Below are positions 595-17,622 of a stretch of 64,000 nt of DNA, piece by piece. The DNA comes from Octopus sinensis (taxonomy: Eukaryota), in contig NC_042997.1 of NCBI RefSeq assembly GCF_006345805.1, positions 152,272,001 through 152,336,000 on the forward strand, read 5' to 3'. The first letter of the stretch is position 1; each line of letters begins with the position of its first letter. Both the position numbers and the translations under genes were made by a program. The notes beneath the pieces are model-generated. The model saw only the letters and a program-made list of their open reading frames with translations, did no database searches and was not told where the DNA came from.

Positions 595-690
595 CTTAAC
601 TGTAATAACACCATCCCGGCCAACTTTTTTCATAGCACTGGAGATAATGTCCCCAATGGAACGGTCACCATTAGCAGAAATGGTAGCTAC
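595..690 (-). CDS. HSPD1: HSP60 coding exon 3 ([32 protein letters not shown])
   Basis: GroEL/HSP60 motif; acceptor ctttataaag| at 691, donor AAG|GTGAG at 594; 96 nt, phase 0/0. Later exons lie left of the window. Confidence 0.97.
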
Positions 691-776
691 CTTTATAAAG
701 AAACAAAAATTCAATTTCAGATATAGCAGCATGGATTGAATGCAATTCATTTACTTAACAAAGAAAAATACTGAAT

Positions 777-896
777 ACTTGTCTCCAAAAACAAGTATAA
801 CTGTTATCAACAGCCATTTACTGAATAGGAGTTTTACTTTAGCACCAGTACGAAAATTCAGAGACAAATGGTCCAGAATTGTAGGAAATAAGTGCA
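777..896 (-). ncRNA. Candidate box H/ACA snoRNA in HSP60 intron 3
   Basis: Minus strand. Hairpin 1 (GCAC/GTGC lower stem, AATTC..GAC/GTC..GAATT upper stem); H box AAAGTA (840-835); hairpin 2 (CTCC/GGAG lower, TGGCTGTT/AACAGTTA upper); ACA at 782-780 plus 3 nt. 120 nt long, ending 86 nt before the acceptor. Folded by eye. Confidence 0.6.
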
Positions 897-1315
897 TTTT
901 ATAATATAAGAAAGAACATAGCACACTAAAGCTATATGTTCCTAGTCGTGGTATATGACCTACTTAAGTTACCAACCATATACAAATTCAACTTTTCTGC
1001 CTGCCTATGTTCTCTCTTGTGGGTTTGAGGTAGTTGTGAATTCTTGGCAGAGAAGAAGTAAAGAGACTCTCTTTGTTACAAAATACAAAAAGAAAATGTC
1101 ATGAAGAAAGACAAGAGAGCAATTCAGGAGATCTCATTGAAAGAATAGACAGGAAATTAACTATCGCATTTTATAATGTATGCAATAATTTGCTGTCTTA
1201 TCACTTCTTACCCGTGATACACAAAAATAGCAAGATTGCCAATGCATATTGGCTTAATATTAAAAGTTTGACAGAAGAAACAAGAGACAGAAGATACAAT
1301 ATAAATTTTCCATAC

Positions 1316-1651
1316 CTGAGCAATCTCTTCCGGTGTTGTGACTTGCCTGGACTGGCTCTTTAGTTGCTCTACGACAACATCAACAGCATTCATAACACCG
1401 TGTCTAATTTCTATGGGATTAGCTCCACGACTGATCTTGTCAAACCCTTCTTTGGCAATAGATCGAGCAAGCACTGTAGCTGTTGTAGTGCCATCACCAG
1501 CCTCCTCATTTGTATTGTTGGCAACATCTTGCACCAACTTAGCTCCAATGTTCATAAATTTGTCCTTCAACTCAACAGCCTTGGCAACAGTCACACCGTC
1601 TTTAGTAATCTTAGGGCTTCCCCAGCTCTGTTCAATGATCACATTTCGTCC
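1316..1651 (-). CDS. HSPD1: HSP60 coding exon 2 ([24 protein letters not shown]...[13 protein letters not shown]...PEEIAQ)
   Basis: Contains the chaperonin GDGTTT ATP-binding motif; acceptor ttttgtaag|, donor CAG|GTATGG; 336 nt, phase 0/0. Confidence 0.98.
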
Positions 1652-2962: not shown

Positions 2963-3052
2963 TAAATGAAAATCAGAATGTGATTAGTTGAACGTTTATT
3001 ATCACCCAGCTCTGTAATTTAACAAATAGAAGTGTTTAGATTCACACATACG

Positions 3053-3357
3053 TCATCATCATCGTTTAACGTCCGCTTTCCATGCCAGCATGGGTTGGAC
3101 GATTTTGACTAAGGACTAGCGAACCAGATGGCTGCACCAGGCTTCCAATCTTAATCTGGCAGAGTTTCTACAGCTGGATGCCCTACCTAACGCCAACCAC
3201 TCCAAGAGTGTTGTGGGTGCTTTTTACGTGTCACCAGCACGAGGGCCAGTCAGGCGGTACTGGCAATGACCTTGCTCGAATCTTTTTACACATGCCACCA
3301 GCACAGGTGCCAGTAAGGCAATGATGGTAATAATCACGCTTGAATGGTACCTTTTAC
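3053..3357 (-). mobile_element. 3' tail fragment of an RTE-type LINE/SINE family ending in (GAT)n
   Basis: Matches the 3' end of the element at 24510-25390 (...GCATGGAAAGCGGACGTTAAACGATGATGA). Further copies at 7435-7622, 9395-9582 and ~20915-21525. Confidence 0.8.
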
Positions 3358-4439: not shown

Positions 4440-7187
4440 TATGTGGATGGAGGGTAAAAAATTATTAGTTGAATACATTAAGACCTGCTTAGATTTACAT
4501 ATATAAACACAATATACAAAACCCATTTGTTCACTTTACATTCACTAAAATATTCAAACTAAACAAATATACATAACAAAATTTGCCTCTTTCTGCTGTA
4601 GTCAAAACTCAGTTAAAGGGGTGAAGTCTTGTGAAGTGCACTATAACTTCACAAGTGCTGGTACCACGAAAAGAAAAAAAAAGGCATTATTCTATAAAGT
4701 GACTGGTTTATGAAATAAAGTAGAAGCTATACCAAAAGAGACGGGAGGGGGGGGACATGATGCAGTCCTTGGTCCTGCCAGATCCCATCAAACCAAGCCA
4801 GTAGAGAACATGGATATTAAAATATGATACACACATGTCAGGTTGCTTACAAGTACTACTGTTACATGAACGACAATGACTATCAGTAGCACAAGAACAT
4901 AGAACCTTTGAATTGGGATCCAACAGGCTATGTAAGACGAGTGAAGTGAAGCAACCCTTATTGCTTGTCAAAGAATGTCTCTAAAAGGAGACACTACTTT
5001 GTACGGCCAAACCGATATAGCTGTTAGTTAAACTGGGCTTCGCAGCTCAGAAAGACAAAAATGAACTTCAGAAACGCAACCACATGTGGATTGTTGGTGA
5101 TTTTTTTTCCTTAGACTTTCCAACGAAGAGCTAAGCTTGAAATGTTAACAACTCTCTCCTTTCACCAAGTGTTAAATTAATATATTGCCTGTGCACATCC
5201 TCACATTTGCTTTTCCTTTCTGCTCTTTAATTACTCATTCTTTGAATTGACTAAGAGAAGGCCAACTAGTACAAGCCCTCACTGCTGTTGGTGCCTGCCA
5301 AGAGAAAGGGAGCCAATCCTAAGGGATTGGTTGCCTAAGGGAGCCAATCCCTTAGGGTAAATCAAGTCAGAAGAGAAATACTCACACCAACCCTCAGGCT
5401 CTATTTATGCCAAAGAGAGCCGGAAGATTCAATGAATGGGGTGTCCTAGAGGATTCTAACCCTGAGTCATGACAATGGGAATATTCATTTACTTTTTAAA
5501 AGGCAAGTAAAAGGAGTTAGTGCCAAGAAGTGCATTCAGCTGTAAGCTACCTAAAAACAGTCCCTTTTAACCAGTGCCAGCATGAAGAAGCAGGTGTCAA
5601 TGATTATCATTCATACCACAAAACTAATTAAGAATTGACGTGAGAAGAGTGAGGTGAGCCAGCAAGAATTAATGTGAATAGTGTTGGATCGGTGAAATGG
5701 AAGATGAAAATGCTGACTTTGTGACTTAGAGGAGTTAGAAGATAAGTGGCAATAAAAGCAAATGAGAGAGCAGGAGATCACTTCACTGCAACTCAGGTCT
5801 ACTCAGCATAAATTAGAGTTCTTTGCATTGTACAAGACCCAGTCACTTTACTGAAATGCAGGATAATTAGTATGCATCAGCATATCTAAATGAATACAAT
5901 TAACACAAGAAAACCAACAGAAAAATTTTGAAGTGGAGGCACATTATTCACATCACAAACTTATGAGGAAAAGGTTGAATGCCACAGCTTGTTCCATTTA
6001 TTCCTACTATAAATCAACTGTGGGAAATGGTTGAGATCAAAGTGAACCTTTCTGAAACATCTAGCTCAATAATAAAGAAATTAAGTTCTTTCTAAACACA
6101 GTCAATAAAATACCATTATTATAGAAACCATGTTATTTGTGTCTGAGCTTTGTTCTGTTTGCAAATTGAGTACACTAAGGGAAGTCCTTATAAAAGGAAG
6201 ACGCAAACACAAGCCTGTTTTTGGAGGGAGCAGGGGACATTAACAAGTAAATGACATAGGCAGGCCACAGACATTGTTACAAGTTACTATGTAAGTTACT
6301 ATACAAAAAACATCACTCATTTCATTCCAAGAAATTAGTGTTACAACAGATTGGACACAAAAGAAGAACCAGTGCAGCAGGCCTAAAGGAGGCCCATCAC
6401 CAGAGATCGAAGAGAATTCAGATACACATGGCTCTATTAGCTTTCTAAACATCACCGTCAGTAAATAAAGCAATTAACATAGACGATTCATGCCATTTAT
6501 TTGTTCAAGTATCTTTTTCCGTTCATAAAAGAATGCTTAGGGTAAAAAAACAGCAGCAAAAGTAAAGAATACGTACAACCTGATGGGTTTTTGTTACGCC
6601 GAAAACGGGTGGTGTATGTATTCTTTACCTCAACCGAAACAGCTTCCAACTGATAACAAAGCCCCTGCGGTTTAAGAGAAAGGGGTGAAGCGATCACTCG
6701 CCTTTACTTTTCCAAGAACATTAGTACCATGTCAAAATAAGGGACATCAACCTCTCAGGGGTTACCACCTACTACAATACAAAACGCACGATGATCGACA
6801 AAAATTGTCACAACAAAACGAGTAAGTTTTTTTTTAACATAGCAACACAATATATTCCAAACGTTCTGTTGTATTTAATGTTTCCCATGCGTATAACTAT
6901 TCTATTATAGAAATAAAATAGCAAATAAATGGGAAGGAAAGCATCAACAGAAGATGCTAAACCTCAAATAAAAGAGATTCATTGTCTCTTACCAGATTAA
7001 TCACCTTCAATCATCTTTCCAGACCACAACTAATACTGTCAGTCCTCAAACTGAAATCTTAATTCAATATGTTAGACATGGTTTTAAAACCATACTGCCA
7101 TTAGGCTGCAAAAATACATGTATTTATAAGCTTAAGACTGCAGAACTGAAGTGAGGACATCTTTCAAGTTAGTAGAACAGTACAGAT

Positions 7188-7350
7188 CAATGGTTCTCAA
7201 CTAGGATCCAGATAAGATTTTGCTGTCAAATTTTACAGGCAATAAATTGGTTATGTTTCTACAATATACAAATTAAACATTTTTTATAGAACTCCTATAG
7301 GAACCAAAGGGGTCCACGGGCAAATAGTTGAAAATAGTTGAGAAACACTG
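7188..7350. mobile_element. hAT-type (Charlie-like) MITE remnant inside the tandem unit; second copy at 9155-9310
   Basis: CAATGGTTCTCAACT ... AGTTGAGAAACACTG termini resemble the intact MITE at 59922-60268. Confidence 0.65.
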
Positions 7351-7909
7351 ATATAAAGATCTAGCAATGCGTAACTTTTATGAAGTCCTGAGAGTTGATC
7401 AATACATCTCAGTAATTTAGTACAGCTCGTTTTTGAGCGTGGCCGTTGCCAGTACCGCCTGACTGGCCCTCTCTCGGGGTTGTTGGCGTTAGGAAGGGCA
7501 TCCAACTGTAGAAACTCTGCCAGATCAAATTGGAGTCTGGTGTAGCCATCTGGTTCGCTAGACCTCAGTCAAATCGTCCAACCCACGCTAGCATGGAAAG
7601 CGAACGTTAAACGATGATGATGTTTTTCGGCTGTAACAAGGAATCCTATTCCAAGGAAACATGATCCTTTATTTTGAATATTGCCAACCTAATGTAATGA
7701 AAATGGAAGTTTATAATTGTTAAATATACTCGAATTATTACTCAACAACTTCCCGTTAGTTTGCTTCAGATTCTCACCATAGGAAAATACTAGATCCATT
7801 CTTAATTGGCAATAAAATTAAGGCAATATTTTAAAAACAGCTAGATCCAACATTTTTAAGATAAGGGGAAATTAGAGTTTTTCCAAATTTTACTTCTAAA
7901 GAGGAACCT

Positions 7910-8179
7910 TTGGGCCACCTTCGACTTCGAACGAATCCCTTCGTTTTTTATGACCTTGCTGTTCCCAAGGTCAACTCTCTTTACCCCCAAAACATTTTTA
8001 TCCTACATAAAAAACCCTATGCCATAAACGTAGAAGATATACAACGAAGGGCCCAGCACTTAAGAGAACTTTTAAATAAAACAACTTTAAGCTTTACATG
8101 TCCCTGCCTACAGAAGACCAAGAGGGAAATATTAAAGGTTTTGAAGATCATAAGCGGAATCTACGACAAAGTTATTTGA
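7910..8179 (+). mobile_element. Decayed CR1/L2-type LINE reverse-transcriptase C-terminal remnant; duplicated at 9870-10139
   Basis: VEDIQRRAQHL...LQKTKREILKVLKIISGIYD resembles the CR1-clade motif xExVQRRATK...LExRRxRGDLIxxxKIxxGxxD. Not a host gene. Confidence 0.6.
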
Positions 8180-11100
8180 AAATATAAGGGAACACAATAA
8201 GAAACATGACAGCAACAAGTGAGAATGAACGAGAGAGTAGTGACTATTTAGAAGAAAGCCCTTCTATAAGATGATGCAATCTGAAAAGATTTATCCACAC
8301 CAGGAATAATATAGAAACAACGAAGACGAAAATACGTAATCGCCGTGACCACTACCAAAAGAAGAACTAGTGCAACAGGCCTAAGGGAGGCCCATCACCA
8401 GGGATCGAAGAGAATTCAGATACACATGGCTCTAATAAAGAATAAAGTTTCTTTGCTTTTTAAACATCACTGTCAGTAAATAAAGCAATTAACAGACGGT
8501 TCATGCCATTTATTTGCTCACGTATCTTTTTCCGTCCATAAAAAAATGCCTAGGGTAAAAAAAAAACAGCGGCAAAAGTAAAGAATACGTACAACCTGAT
8601 GGGTTTTTGTTACGCCGAAAACAAAGCCCCTGCAGTTCAAGAGAAAGGGGCGAAACAATCAGTCGCCTTTACTTTTCCAAGAACATTAGTACCATGTCAA
8701 AAAACGGGACATCGACCTCTCAAGGGTTACCACCTACGACAATACAATACGGACGATGATCATAAAAAAATTGTCACAACAAAACGAGTAAGTTTTTTTT
8801 TTAACATAGCAACACAATATATTCCAAACGTTCTGTTGTATTTAATGTTTCCCATGCGTATAACTATTCTATTATAGAAATAAAATAGCAAATAAATGGG
8901 AAGGAAAGCATCAACAGAAGATGCTAAACCTCAAATAAAAGAGATTCATTGTCTCTTACCAGATTTATCACCTTCAATCATCTTTCCAGACCACAACTAA
9001 TACTGCCAGTCCTCAAACTGAAATCTTAATTCAATATGTTAGACATGGTTTTAAAACCATACTGCCATTAGGCTGCAAAAATACATGTATTTATAAGCTT
9101 AAGATTGCAGAACTGAAGTGAGGACATCTTTCAAGTTAGTAGAACAGTACAGATCAATGGTTCTCAACTAGGATCCAGATAAGATTTTGCTGTCAAAATT
9201 TATGGGCAATAAATTGGTAATGTTTCTACAATATACAAATTAAACATTTTTTATAGAACTCCTATAGGAACCAAAGGGGTCCACAGGCAAAAAATAGTTG
9301 AGAAACACTGATATAAAGATCTAGTAATGCATAACTTTTATGAAGTCCTGAGAGTTGATCAATACATCTCAGTAATTTAGTACAGCTCGTTTTTGAGCGT
9401 GGCCGTTGCCAGTACCGCCTGACTGGCCCTCTCTCGGGGTTGTTGGCGTTAGGAAGGGCATCCAACTGTAGAAACTCTGCCAGATCAAATTGGAGTCTGG
9501 TGTAGCCATCTGGTTCGCCAGACCTCAGTCAAATCGTCCAACCCACGCTAGCATGGAAAGCGAACGTTAAACGATGATGATGTTTTTCAGCTGTAACAAG
9601 GAATCCTATTCCAAGGAAACATGTTCCTTTATTTTGAATATTGCCTACCTAATGTAATGAAAATGGAAGTTTATAATCGTTAAATATATTCGAATTATTA
9701 CTCAATAACTTCCCGTTAGTTTGCTTCAGATTCTCACCATAGAAAAATACTAGATCCATTCTTAATTGGCAATAAAAATAAGGCAATATTTTAAAAACAG
9801 CTAGATCCAACATTTTTAAGATAAGGGGAAATTGGAGTTTTTCCAAATTTTACTTCTAAAGAGGAACCTTTGGGCCACCTTCGACTTCGGACGAATCCCT
9901 TCGGTTTTTATGACCTTGCTGTTCCCAAGGTCAACTCCCTTTACCCCCAAAACATTTTTATCCTACATAAAAGACCCAATGCCATAAACGTAGAAGATAT
10001 ACAACGAAGGGCCCAGCACTTAAGAGAACTTTTAAATAAAACAACTTTAAGCTTTACATGTCCCTGCCTACAGAAGACCAAAAGGGAAATATTAAAGGTT
10101 TTGAAGATCATAAGCGGAATCTACGACAAAGTTATTTGAAAATATAAGGGAACACGATAAGAAACAGGACAGCAACAAGTGCAAATTAACGTAAGGAAAC
10201 ACTACGAGAGAGTAGTGAATATTTAGAAGAGAGCCCTTCCATAAGATGATGCAATCTGAAAAGATTTATCCACTCCAGAAACAACGAAGACGAAAATACA
10301 TAATCGCCGTGACCACTACCAAAAGAAGAACTAGTGTAACAGGCCTAAAGGAGGCCCATCACCAGAGATCGAAGAGAATTCAGATACACATGGCTCTAAT
10401 AAAGAATAAAGTTTCTTTTCTTTCTAAACATCACTGACAGTAAATAAAGCAATTAACATAGACGGTTCATGCCATTTATTTGCTCACGTATCTTTTTCCG
10501 TTCATAAAAAAATGCCTAGAGTAAAAAAACAGCGGCAAAAGTAAAGAATACGTACAACCTGATGGGTTTTTGTTACGCCGAAAACGGGTGGTGTATGTAT
10601 TCTTTACCTCAACTGAAACGGCTTCCAACTGATAACAAAGCCCCTGCAGTTCAAGAGAAAGGGGCGAAACAATCAGTCGCCTTTACTTTTCCAAGAACAT
10701 TAGTACCATGTCAAAAAAACGGGACATCGACCTCTCAGGGGTTACCACCTACTACACGATGATCAACAAAAATTGTCACAACAAAACGAATAAGTTTTTT
10801 TTAACATAGCAACACAATATATTCCAAACGTTCTGTTGTATTTAATGTTTCCCATGCGTATAACTATTCTATTATAAAAAATAAAATAGCAAATAAATGG
10901 GAGTAAACGAGGTAGCAATAATGTCAAATTGAGAAAAAATTTTTAACGATTCAAAAGAAAAAAAAAATCAGGCAACAATTCGCAAATCAGACCGTTAAAG
11001 CCGACTAGAATGTTCGTTCTAGTTATTAACACCACTGATTTATATAAGATGTTGTCATTTCAAGGGCATTGCGAAAGGAGTCAAATTCTGTAGAAAATAC

Positions 11101-16512: not shown

Positions 16513-17622
16513 TTAAGCCAGTCTATTAGGGAGTACTTTTCGATGATGCTCTGAAATATATAGGTTTTTGGTGGTTTTTGATTATCTCTTATCAGCTCTG
16601 CTTTAAAGTGGCAGCCAGGTCACATAATTGCTCTAATACACACTTTTCCATGCTTGCATGTGTTGGGCAAAGCTTAGTCTGATTTTTCTATGGTTGAGTG
16701 TCCTTGTTGCCAAGCCTCACTTAATTCTGCACAAGGTAATATTTCCCTATGGCCTGATATGTTCTCACAGATTACTAGAAATGCATGACTTGTGTGACAG
16801 TAATGCTCATCTATGACTATCACGCAATGTCAAGTCAAGGAGATACACGATGGCCTTCTTTCAGTGTCTACCAAATCCACTCAAAAAGCTTTAGTCAGCC
16901 CAGTGTTATAGTAGAAGACATTTGTCCAATGTGCCACACATTGGGATTGAACCCAGAACCATTTGATGGGGAAGCAAACTTCTTACCACACTGTCATGTC
17001 TGCACCTAATTATCTGATTTGTTGCACATAAAAAATGAAATAATTAGCAAGGCATATAAACCCACGTTTGAATTGAAAGTATATACACCTAATTATAGGC
17101 AAAATGCTATTATTACTTAAGCCATCTTGTTGCTTGCTGTGTTCATCTGATGCTCCCACTAATCTCAGTCCTTCTACTACAGATCATCTGCCTTTCTAAT
17201 TGTTTTTCCTGCAATCTTTTAACTTCATAATAATACTCAAATTGAACATCAGCCTATTAATTTCACATGGTCTCAGCAGGCCTTCAAAGGTCATAGATAA
17301 CGACTTTCTTTGTGATGAGATTTTTTTTTTAAATTGGACCTGTTGCAATAAATGCATAGTAATATTTTTTTTTTTACATTATTAGAAATGTCAAGTCACT
17401 GAGTTTACTTGTAAGCAAGCTGTTTTAAATTAAGATTGTCTTCCCAATATAAAAGGCTAAAAGGTGTTCCTTGGAATTTGGCCTCTACAGTGAGCTAGTT
17501 ATGTTGAAACCTGTTGATGATTATGTATTACAGTTGTAATTTTCTAAAATATAATTTGCTAATCTGCCATTTGTAATAAATTTATGAATCATACATAAGA
17601 CTTTTTATTATTATTATTATAG

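Follow-up and report, generated by a model that had tools for sequence, protein, structure and literature searches.

A predicted orphan box H/ACA snoRNA in intron 3 of a mitochondrial HSP60 gene

Positions 896..777 of the window (the whole 64-kb stretch of DNA analysed here), read on the minus strand, hold a predicted intron-encoded box H/ACA snoRNA of about 120 nt, which on balance we believe to be genuine and which would be both new and orphan. We lean towards this reading because the strands of its first internal loop are conserved, the boxes and their spacing are kept, the fold is strand-specific, and the element is a single-copy sequence lying in an intron in the sense orientation of its host gene. 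The layout, the boxes, their spacing, the strand-specific folding and the conservation across saturated divergence are direct observations. Taken on their own, the layout, the fold and a 9-nt match to rRNA are not more than chance; in our sequence comparisons, the candidate exceeds chance through its conservation in a deeply diverged relative, L081.

Host intron and anatomy of the candidate

The first 2.9 kb of the window hold, on the minus strand, the 5′ part of the mitochondrial HSP60 gene, the exon translations of which have chaperonin 60 proteins as their homologues. An earlier coding exon has its 3′ end at about 2562 (…AVAVTMGPK). The exon that precedes the host intron (1316..1648) ends in …TTPEEIAQ, the host intron itself, HSP60 intron 3, occupies 691..1315 (625 nt, GT…AG, GC content of 32%) and the downstream exon lies at 595..690, all three on the minus strand. 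The position of this intron (between …EEIAQ and VATISANGD) is common to many animals. At this position the length varies from ~160 nt to >6 kb (the latter in L086) across the fetched loci; in L007 the homologous intron (between exons, at about 460–620) measures only ~162 nt and the gene caller reads through it in frame. Elsewhere in the window, on the plus strand, positions 6440–10780 form a tandem array of two to three copies of a unit of ~1.96 kb (89–99% identity), which appears in the ORF list as duplicated mechanical ORFs.

The candidate (777..896, minus strand; orthologous element at 10906–11029 in L081) is a 120-nt succession of hairpin 1, a hinge with the H box, hairpin 2, and an ACA box with three further nucleotides. 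This is the hairpin–H(AAAGUA)–hairpin–ACA+3 layout that the initial annotation had described on the HSP60 sense strand, and all of its sequence facts are correct, including the 86 nt that separate the candidate 3′ end (777) from the acceptor AG (692–691). One detail has to be amended: the lower stem of hairpin 1, previously counted as 4 bp, has 5 bp including one U•G, GCACU (891..895, minus strand; GCACC in L081) pairing with GGUGC (842..846, minus strand, read as 846–842; 5/5 conserved in L081). The first pocket opens above this stem. Its 5′ arm, UAUUUCCUAC (881..890, minus strand, plus A880), is identical in L081 (11/11). Its 3′ arm was taken as the 9-nt UUCGUACUG (846..854, minus strand; UUCGCACGG in L081); the arm proper is UUCGUACU (854–847), G846 really being the first base of the lower stem. 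The pocket is topped by the upper stem-loop AAUUC.GGAC-CAUUU-GUCU..GAAUU (855..880, minus strand), which is divergent in sequence in L081 and kept there as a stem-loop (CUGGAG/CUUCAG).

The H box AAAGUA (ANANNA; 835..840, minus strand) lies one base (U) 3′ of the lower stem in the window and in L081 alike, and reads AAAUAA at the same place in L081. The distance from the top of pocket 1 to the H box is 14 nt in the window and 16 nt in L081, both within the 14–16 nt criterion. Hairpin 2 (783..831, minus strand) has a lower stem formed by CUCC (831–828) and GGAG (786–783) and an upper stem at about 817–809/805–797; its pocket is 15 nt from the box, with an 8-bp upper stem, and L081 has a hairpin of equal length with a poorly conserved sequence. 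The ACA box (780..782, minus strand) comes directly after hairpin 2 and is followed by AGU, with AUA at the equivalent spot in L081; the spacing from the H box to ACA is 52 nt in the window compared with 53 nt to AUA in L081. The lower stems of the candidate are short (4–5 bp). The CAB box UGAG, on which assignment as a scaRNA would depend, is absent from the apical loops, which are CAUUU and GAU in the window and UUGUCU and GUAA in L081. The candidate is single-copy and not a repeat, both in the 64-kb window and in all fetched loci, and a 57-aa ORF running over it matched only spurious repetitive proteins in a representative protein library.

Folded at full length (120–126 nt), the window RNA has a z-score of −1.1 to −1.5. 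Its centroid structure keeps hairpin 1, and its minimum free energy (MFE) structure is not the H/ACA fold because a competing 8-bp hairpin (ACUUGU/ACAAGU) within ACUUGUUUUUGGAGACAAGU (window 777–800, minus strand) buries the ACA box; L081 has no equivalent of this sequestering hairpin. Folded in isolation, both window hairpins take the H/ACA shape, with z = −2.45 for hairpin 1 (−2.30 in L081) and z = −1.73 for hairpin 2 (−2.83 in L081).

Arrangements of this kind are frequent. A layout scanner (lower stems ≥4 bp, upper closing stem ≥5 bp, pocket-to-box distance 13–16 nt, ANANNA and ACA) found 35 distinct minus-strand loci and 29 plus-strand loci with the loose H/ACA layout in the window, and in block-wise dinucleotide shuffles the layout occurred 36–49 times (mean of 41). 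The scanner is a crude control and not a detector: it missed the L081 orthologue because the upper stem of that copy has an internal loop. As for the match to rRNA, the rRNAs of contig L022, which carries a metazoan-type rDNA unit, contain exact complements of 2% of the 9-mers that make up the window; the probability of an exact 9-mer rRNA match is 0.02 for one pre-specified arm and about 0.28 over the ~16 arm windows of the two pockets. Nine nucleotides of perfect rRNA complementarity in a pocket arm are close to what chance would give, and by themselves are no ground for assigning a target.

Conservation in L081 and other relatives

The HSP60 exon translations were compared with a protein collection and the encoding contigs were fetched, giving eight informative HSP60 loci. 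The evidence for conservation of the element comes from one informative orthologue (n = 1), L081, a 314-kb ENA contig that is the next-closest HSP60 locus after L001–L005. The HSP60 exons of L081 and the window are 78–83% identical (90% for the exon 3 protein), with only 48–50% identity at third codon positions and 35–40% at four-fold sites, so that synonymous divergence is saturated. A BLAST comparison of the first 3.2 kb of the window with L081 returned three exons and, besides short low-complexity matches, a single intronic match: window 896..827 against L081 10906..10977, in the homologous intron, in the same orientation and with E = 8e-6. Smith–Waterman alignment of intron 3 between the two gave a score of 59, compared with 27.1 ± 2.7 (maximum of 42) for 1000 dinucleotide shuffles; the score is thus ~12 sd above the null and was reached by none of the 1000 shuffles. 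The conserved block (827..896, minus strand) starts at the first base of the candidate (896) and reaches through hairpin 1 and the H box into the beginning of hairpin 2. It is the only alignable island in introns that are otherwise saturated. The orthologous L081 intron also contains a poly-T tract of ~65 nt (10500–10570), and the upstream HSP60 intron is ~6.2 kb long in L081 compared with ~0.9 kb in the window.

The L081 element reads CUGCACC-UAUUUCCUACA-GUUUCUGGAGUUGUCUCUUCAGUUAU-CUUUCGCAC-GGGUGC-U-AAAUAA-AAC-(50-nt hairpin)-AUA, with the H box at 10965–10970. Identity to the window is 11/11 in the 5′ arm, 5/5 in the 3′ strand of the lower stem, 10/11 in the hinge and H box (the L081 hinge has one base deleted and ANANNA is still readable) and 7/9 in the 3′ arm. 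The apical stem-loop of hairpin 1 is only about half identical, its stem being re-formed with different bases. In the lower stem of hairpin 1, the U•G of the window becomes C-G in L081, a one-sided pair-keeping change, and in both species the isolated 5′ hairpin has the same shape: a stem of 5–6 bp, an internal loop of 10 + 8/9 nt and an upper stem. Hairpin 2 has the same length in both species and is followed directly by A-C/U-A. Its lower pairs, in box-relative register, are C-G, U-A, C-G and C-G in the window and U•G, U-A, C-G and U-A in L081, which amounts to one one-sided and one two-sided pair-keeping change in a hand-read, alignment-dependent comparison. As far as the aligned sequences tell, this pattern is that of a guide RNA: the arms and boxes are kept, and the apical stem-loop and hairpin 2 have diverged.

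The L081 element also folds as expected for an H/ACA RNA. Its MFE structure is hairpin–hinge (AAAUAA)–hairpin–AUA, at −31.6 kcal/mol with z = −3.05 on the sense strand, compared with z = +0.52, no better than shuffles, for the reverse complement. This fold is strand-specific, and the element is therefore assigned to the HSP60 sense strand. Conservation above the intron background, with the boxes kept, had been set beforehand as the test of the candidate. L081 bears this out for the H box, the lower stem, the arms and the two-hairpin length; as to the second box, AUA stands directly after hairpin 2 where the window has ACA. Some H/ACA RNAs are on record with AUA in place of ACA.

The same conservation could have another cause. 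A conserved intronic element with a different role (a regulator of HSP60 splicing or expression, a protein-binding site or another small RNA) might be merely H/ACA-like, the resemblance arising by chance since an intron with a GC content of 32% readily offers A-rich hinges and short stems. Significant conservation is confined to about 70 nt, running from hairpin 1 through the hinge into the start of hairpin 2, the sequence of hairpin 2 and the ACA box are not conserved, ACA having become AUA, and the chance frequency of the loose layout, the negative target search reported below and the lack of Rfam membership would all be expected of such an element. However, the unpaired loop strands are conserved above the stems, an uncommon pattern where the role is purely structural. 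Both species have a second hairpin of equal length with A[C/U]A equally far along, and the folding of L081 is specific to the host sense strand. A coding micro-exon is excluded by indels that are not multiples of three. We regard another role for the element as unlikely, while considering it the most serious alternative to an H/ACA snoRNA.

Among the other relatives, the closest one (Logan contigs L001–L005; exon 3 protein 95% and four-fold sites 90% identical to the window) is uninformative on the element because its intron 3 cannot be aligned after the first ~60 nt (L001 880–1569 against window 1315–691) and because the contigs stop 690 nt into this intron, before exon 4. In its upstream intron, the last 250 nt are 76% identical to the window; that intron 3 is unalignable despite such closeness implies that one of the two lineages has gained or lost a large segment. 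Elsewhere in the window, the L001 intron 3 has a match for a 50-nt piece only (16902–16951). In five more distant species (L007, L082, L084, L085 and L086) the element is absent from the homologous intron, which speaks against the H/ACA reading, a count from which L006 was left out as having too little upstream sequence.

Is the candidate then simply a chance layout in a neutral intron, devoid of function, with a similarity to L081 due to assembly contamination or to a mobile element that both share? Neither the layout nor the 9-mer exceeds chance level, the fold of the window RNA is not significant and the partial intron of the closest relative shows nothing. Yet the L001 contig stops short of the intron part in question, the alignment with L081 stands far above its null at saturated divergence, in the same intron and in the same orientation, and the element has no second copy in the 64 kb or in any fetched locus. 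We consider an absence of function improbable and retain the H/ACA snoRNA as the preferred reading.

Search for a target of the guide pocket

The rRNA set consisted of 71 metagenomic contigs containing CAGTACGAATACAGACCGTGAAAGCG, in three of which Rfam identified complete eukaryotic LSU, SSU and 5.8S; L022, with a metazoan-type 5.8S, was used as the metazoan-like rDNA unit. Another metagenomic contig with a metazoan-type rDNA unit, L020, carries two histone 3′ stem-loops (Rfam Histone3) at 694–739 and 3016–3062, which suggests that histone genes adjoin the rDNA there.

The initial annotation had pointed out that the 3′ arm, which begins 14 nt before the H box, is exactly complementary to CAGUACGAA, and this can indeed be read in the window and in the L022 LSU: UUCGUACUG occurs once in the window, and CAGUACGAA occurs once in the LSU (position 3036), where it is followed by U-A-CAGACC. 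The CAGUACGAA-U context is conserved eukaryotic LSU sequence, and the U after CAGUACGAA would, according to the initial annotation, be human 28S Psi4282. U4282 is a known human site, SNORA2B being listed as the guide for human 28S U4263 and U4282 (PMC3766210). The perfect 9-nt complement, correctly placed relative to the H box, could thus designate an H/ACA guide whose first pocket directs pseudouridylation of this 28S uridine. Four points make this very unlikely. The best-conserved part of the pocket, the 5′ arm, cannot pair with ACAGACCG downstream of the U, a shortcoming already noticed from the sequence alone and borne out here, ACAGACC being left unpaired. The 3′ arm of the L081 orthologue, UUCGCACGG, has two mismatches with CAGUACGAA. 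A 9-mer complement is expected by chance at 2% for a single window and at about 28% when all arm windows are taken together, and the human guide SNORA2 does not match the candidate. In the original proposal of an H/ACA snoRNA with an arm directed at 28S, the core snoRNA call gains support from the conservation in L081, whereas the 28S arm as a function is not.

The 8-mer CAGUACGA recurs at the sarcin–ricin loop, 296 nt downstream of CAGUACGAA in the L022 LSU. Both arms had been said to fit this loop with no U in the pocket, and we can read the corresponding pairing of 8 + 5 nt (14 with a U•G) on either side of one loop G (CAGUACGA-G-AGGAA) in the window, the UUCCU half of which is conserved in L081. 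A non-modifying H/ACA RNA that pairs across the sarcin–ricin loop as a folding chaperone or shield would account for this arrangement. Such a role has to reckon with a pocket devoid of uridine, with an L081 3′ arm in which the same two mismatches (C·A and G·A) are disruptive changes against a universally invariant target, and with an 8-mer that is the same coincidence as the match to CAGUACGAA; of all the readings weighed here, it is the one to which we give the least credence. Since the L081 mismatches, the unpaired 5′ arm and the lack of a SNORA2 match remove support from both rRNA target readings, the 28S and sarcin–ricin matches are best explained as one coincidental 8–9-mer.

The bases kept in both species predict a substrate of the form 5′-CGAAA(G)-U-N-(U)GUAGGRRR-3′. 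A canonical bipartite search of the L022 rRNAs gave best scores that were no better than those of shuffled arms (p = 0.32–0.64). The search for sites fitting both orthologues, drawn from the 71 LSU-bearing contigs, yielded only spacer matches or G•U-rich single-locus matches in ten metazoan-like rDNA units, and a regular expression for the predicted target matched the rDNA contigs only in ITS or IGS spacers. Three individual sites, namely GAACGAAAG-U in 18S, UGAAAA-U-C-GUGGGGAG in the LSU and GCGAAA-U-U-GAAAUACC, were dropped, as in each case one orthologue fails or the conserved CUACA is unpaired. No target site fitting both orthologues was found in human snRNA sequences, and a scan of viral contigs for the 28S motif found nothing.

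Proposed function and comparison with known H/ACA RNAs

We infer that the RNA is expressed, protein-bound and guides pseudouridylation. The snoRNA would be transcribed within the HSP60 pre-mRNA and freed from the spliced intron by exonucleolytic trimming, against which dyskerin/Cbf5–Nop10–Nhp2–Gar1, assembled on the two hairpins and the H and ACA boxes, would protect it. Its working part would be the 5′-hairpin internal loop, whose two strands, 5′-UAUUUCCUACA and 5′-YUUUCG, hold the best-conserved bases. These strands may clamp a substrate RNA and present one uridine, 14–16 nt upstream of the H box, for isomerisation, and the 3′ hairpin looks structural only. A more specific version, in which a lineage-restricted orphan H/ACA RNA uses its conserved 11-nt 5′ arm on a non-canonical substrate (a spacer or pre-rRNA, an mRNA, or a non-modifying pairing such as that with the sarcin–ricin loop) and has its output tied to stress-inducible HSP60 transcription, strikes us as doubtful.

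If confirmed, the candidate would add an unannotated H/ACA snoRNA, without an Rfam family, to a poorly annotated invertebrate lineage, and would make HSP60 a snoRNA host gene in that lineage, which is routine for snoRNA biology. Because HSP60 is stress-inducible, the amount of guide RNA could then follow the mitochondrial stress response. The extra interest is modest and lies in guide arms that are strictly conserved over saturated divergence without an evident rRNA target.

By the tests run, the candidate does not appear to belong to SNORA54, to SNORA2 or to another Rfam family. At gathering thresholds there was no match in the whole window, and the Rfam check proposed in the initial annotation returned no family at threshold for either the window or the L081 copy. 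Permissive Rfam scans gave only sub-threshold hits to SNORA54 (RF00430), at 15.0 bits for the window and 18.9 bits for L081 against a gathering score of 60. SNORA54 is the best H/ACA model for both copies, with GCAC...GUGCUA-A--A flanking the H box and a 3′-terminal GGAGACA in common; it differs in that the E-values are 0.11–3.4, the scores lie below the gathering threshold, the alignment leaves out the 5′ hairpin and its guide arms bear no relation to those of the candidate. The Rfam SNORA2 model matched neither copy at E ≤ 10. SNORA2 (ACA2) would have complementarity of the 3′ arm in common with the candidate only if the assignment of CAGUACGAA as target were right, whereas the 5′ arm of the candidate does not pair with ACAGACC and the complementarity of its 3′ arm is lost in L081.

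The only precedent for the sarcin–ricin reading is snR30/U17 (SNORA73), which likewise pairs with rRNA without a uridine in the pocket. In snR30, it is the m1/m2 motifs of the 3′ hairpin that pair with ES6 of 18S, and snR30 itself is described as universally conserved. The sarcin–ricin pairing of the candidate differs in lying in the 5′ hairpin and in not being conserved.

With regard to the host gene, the literature searched contained no H/ACA snoRNA hosted by HSPD1 (HSP60) and nothing relevant on mollusc snoRNAs. The location 19q13.2 does not fit HSPD1. It is the location given in a table entry 'SNORD105B/HSPD1' (PMC11495440). Chaperonin genes are known as hosts of H/ACA snoRNAs: SNORA29 is hosted in TCP1 and SNORA15 in CCT6A. 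Human SNORA20 is likewise an H/ACA snoRNA in the chaperonin gene TCP1 (PMC3766210). Compared with the intron-encoded H/ACA snoRNAs of animals in general, the candidate differs in being an orphan without an Rfam family, in its lower stems of 4–5 bp and in the AUA of its orthologue. What it has in common with them is a length close to ~120–130 nt, the order hairpin–H box–hairpin–ACA, a pocket 14–16 nt from the box, an intronic location on the sense strand of a highly expressed housekeeping or chaperone gene, and guide arms conserved above the stems.
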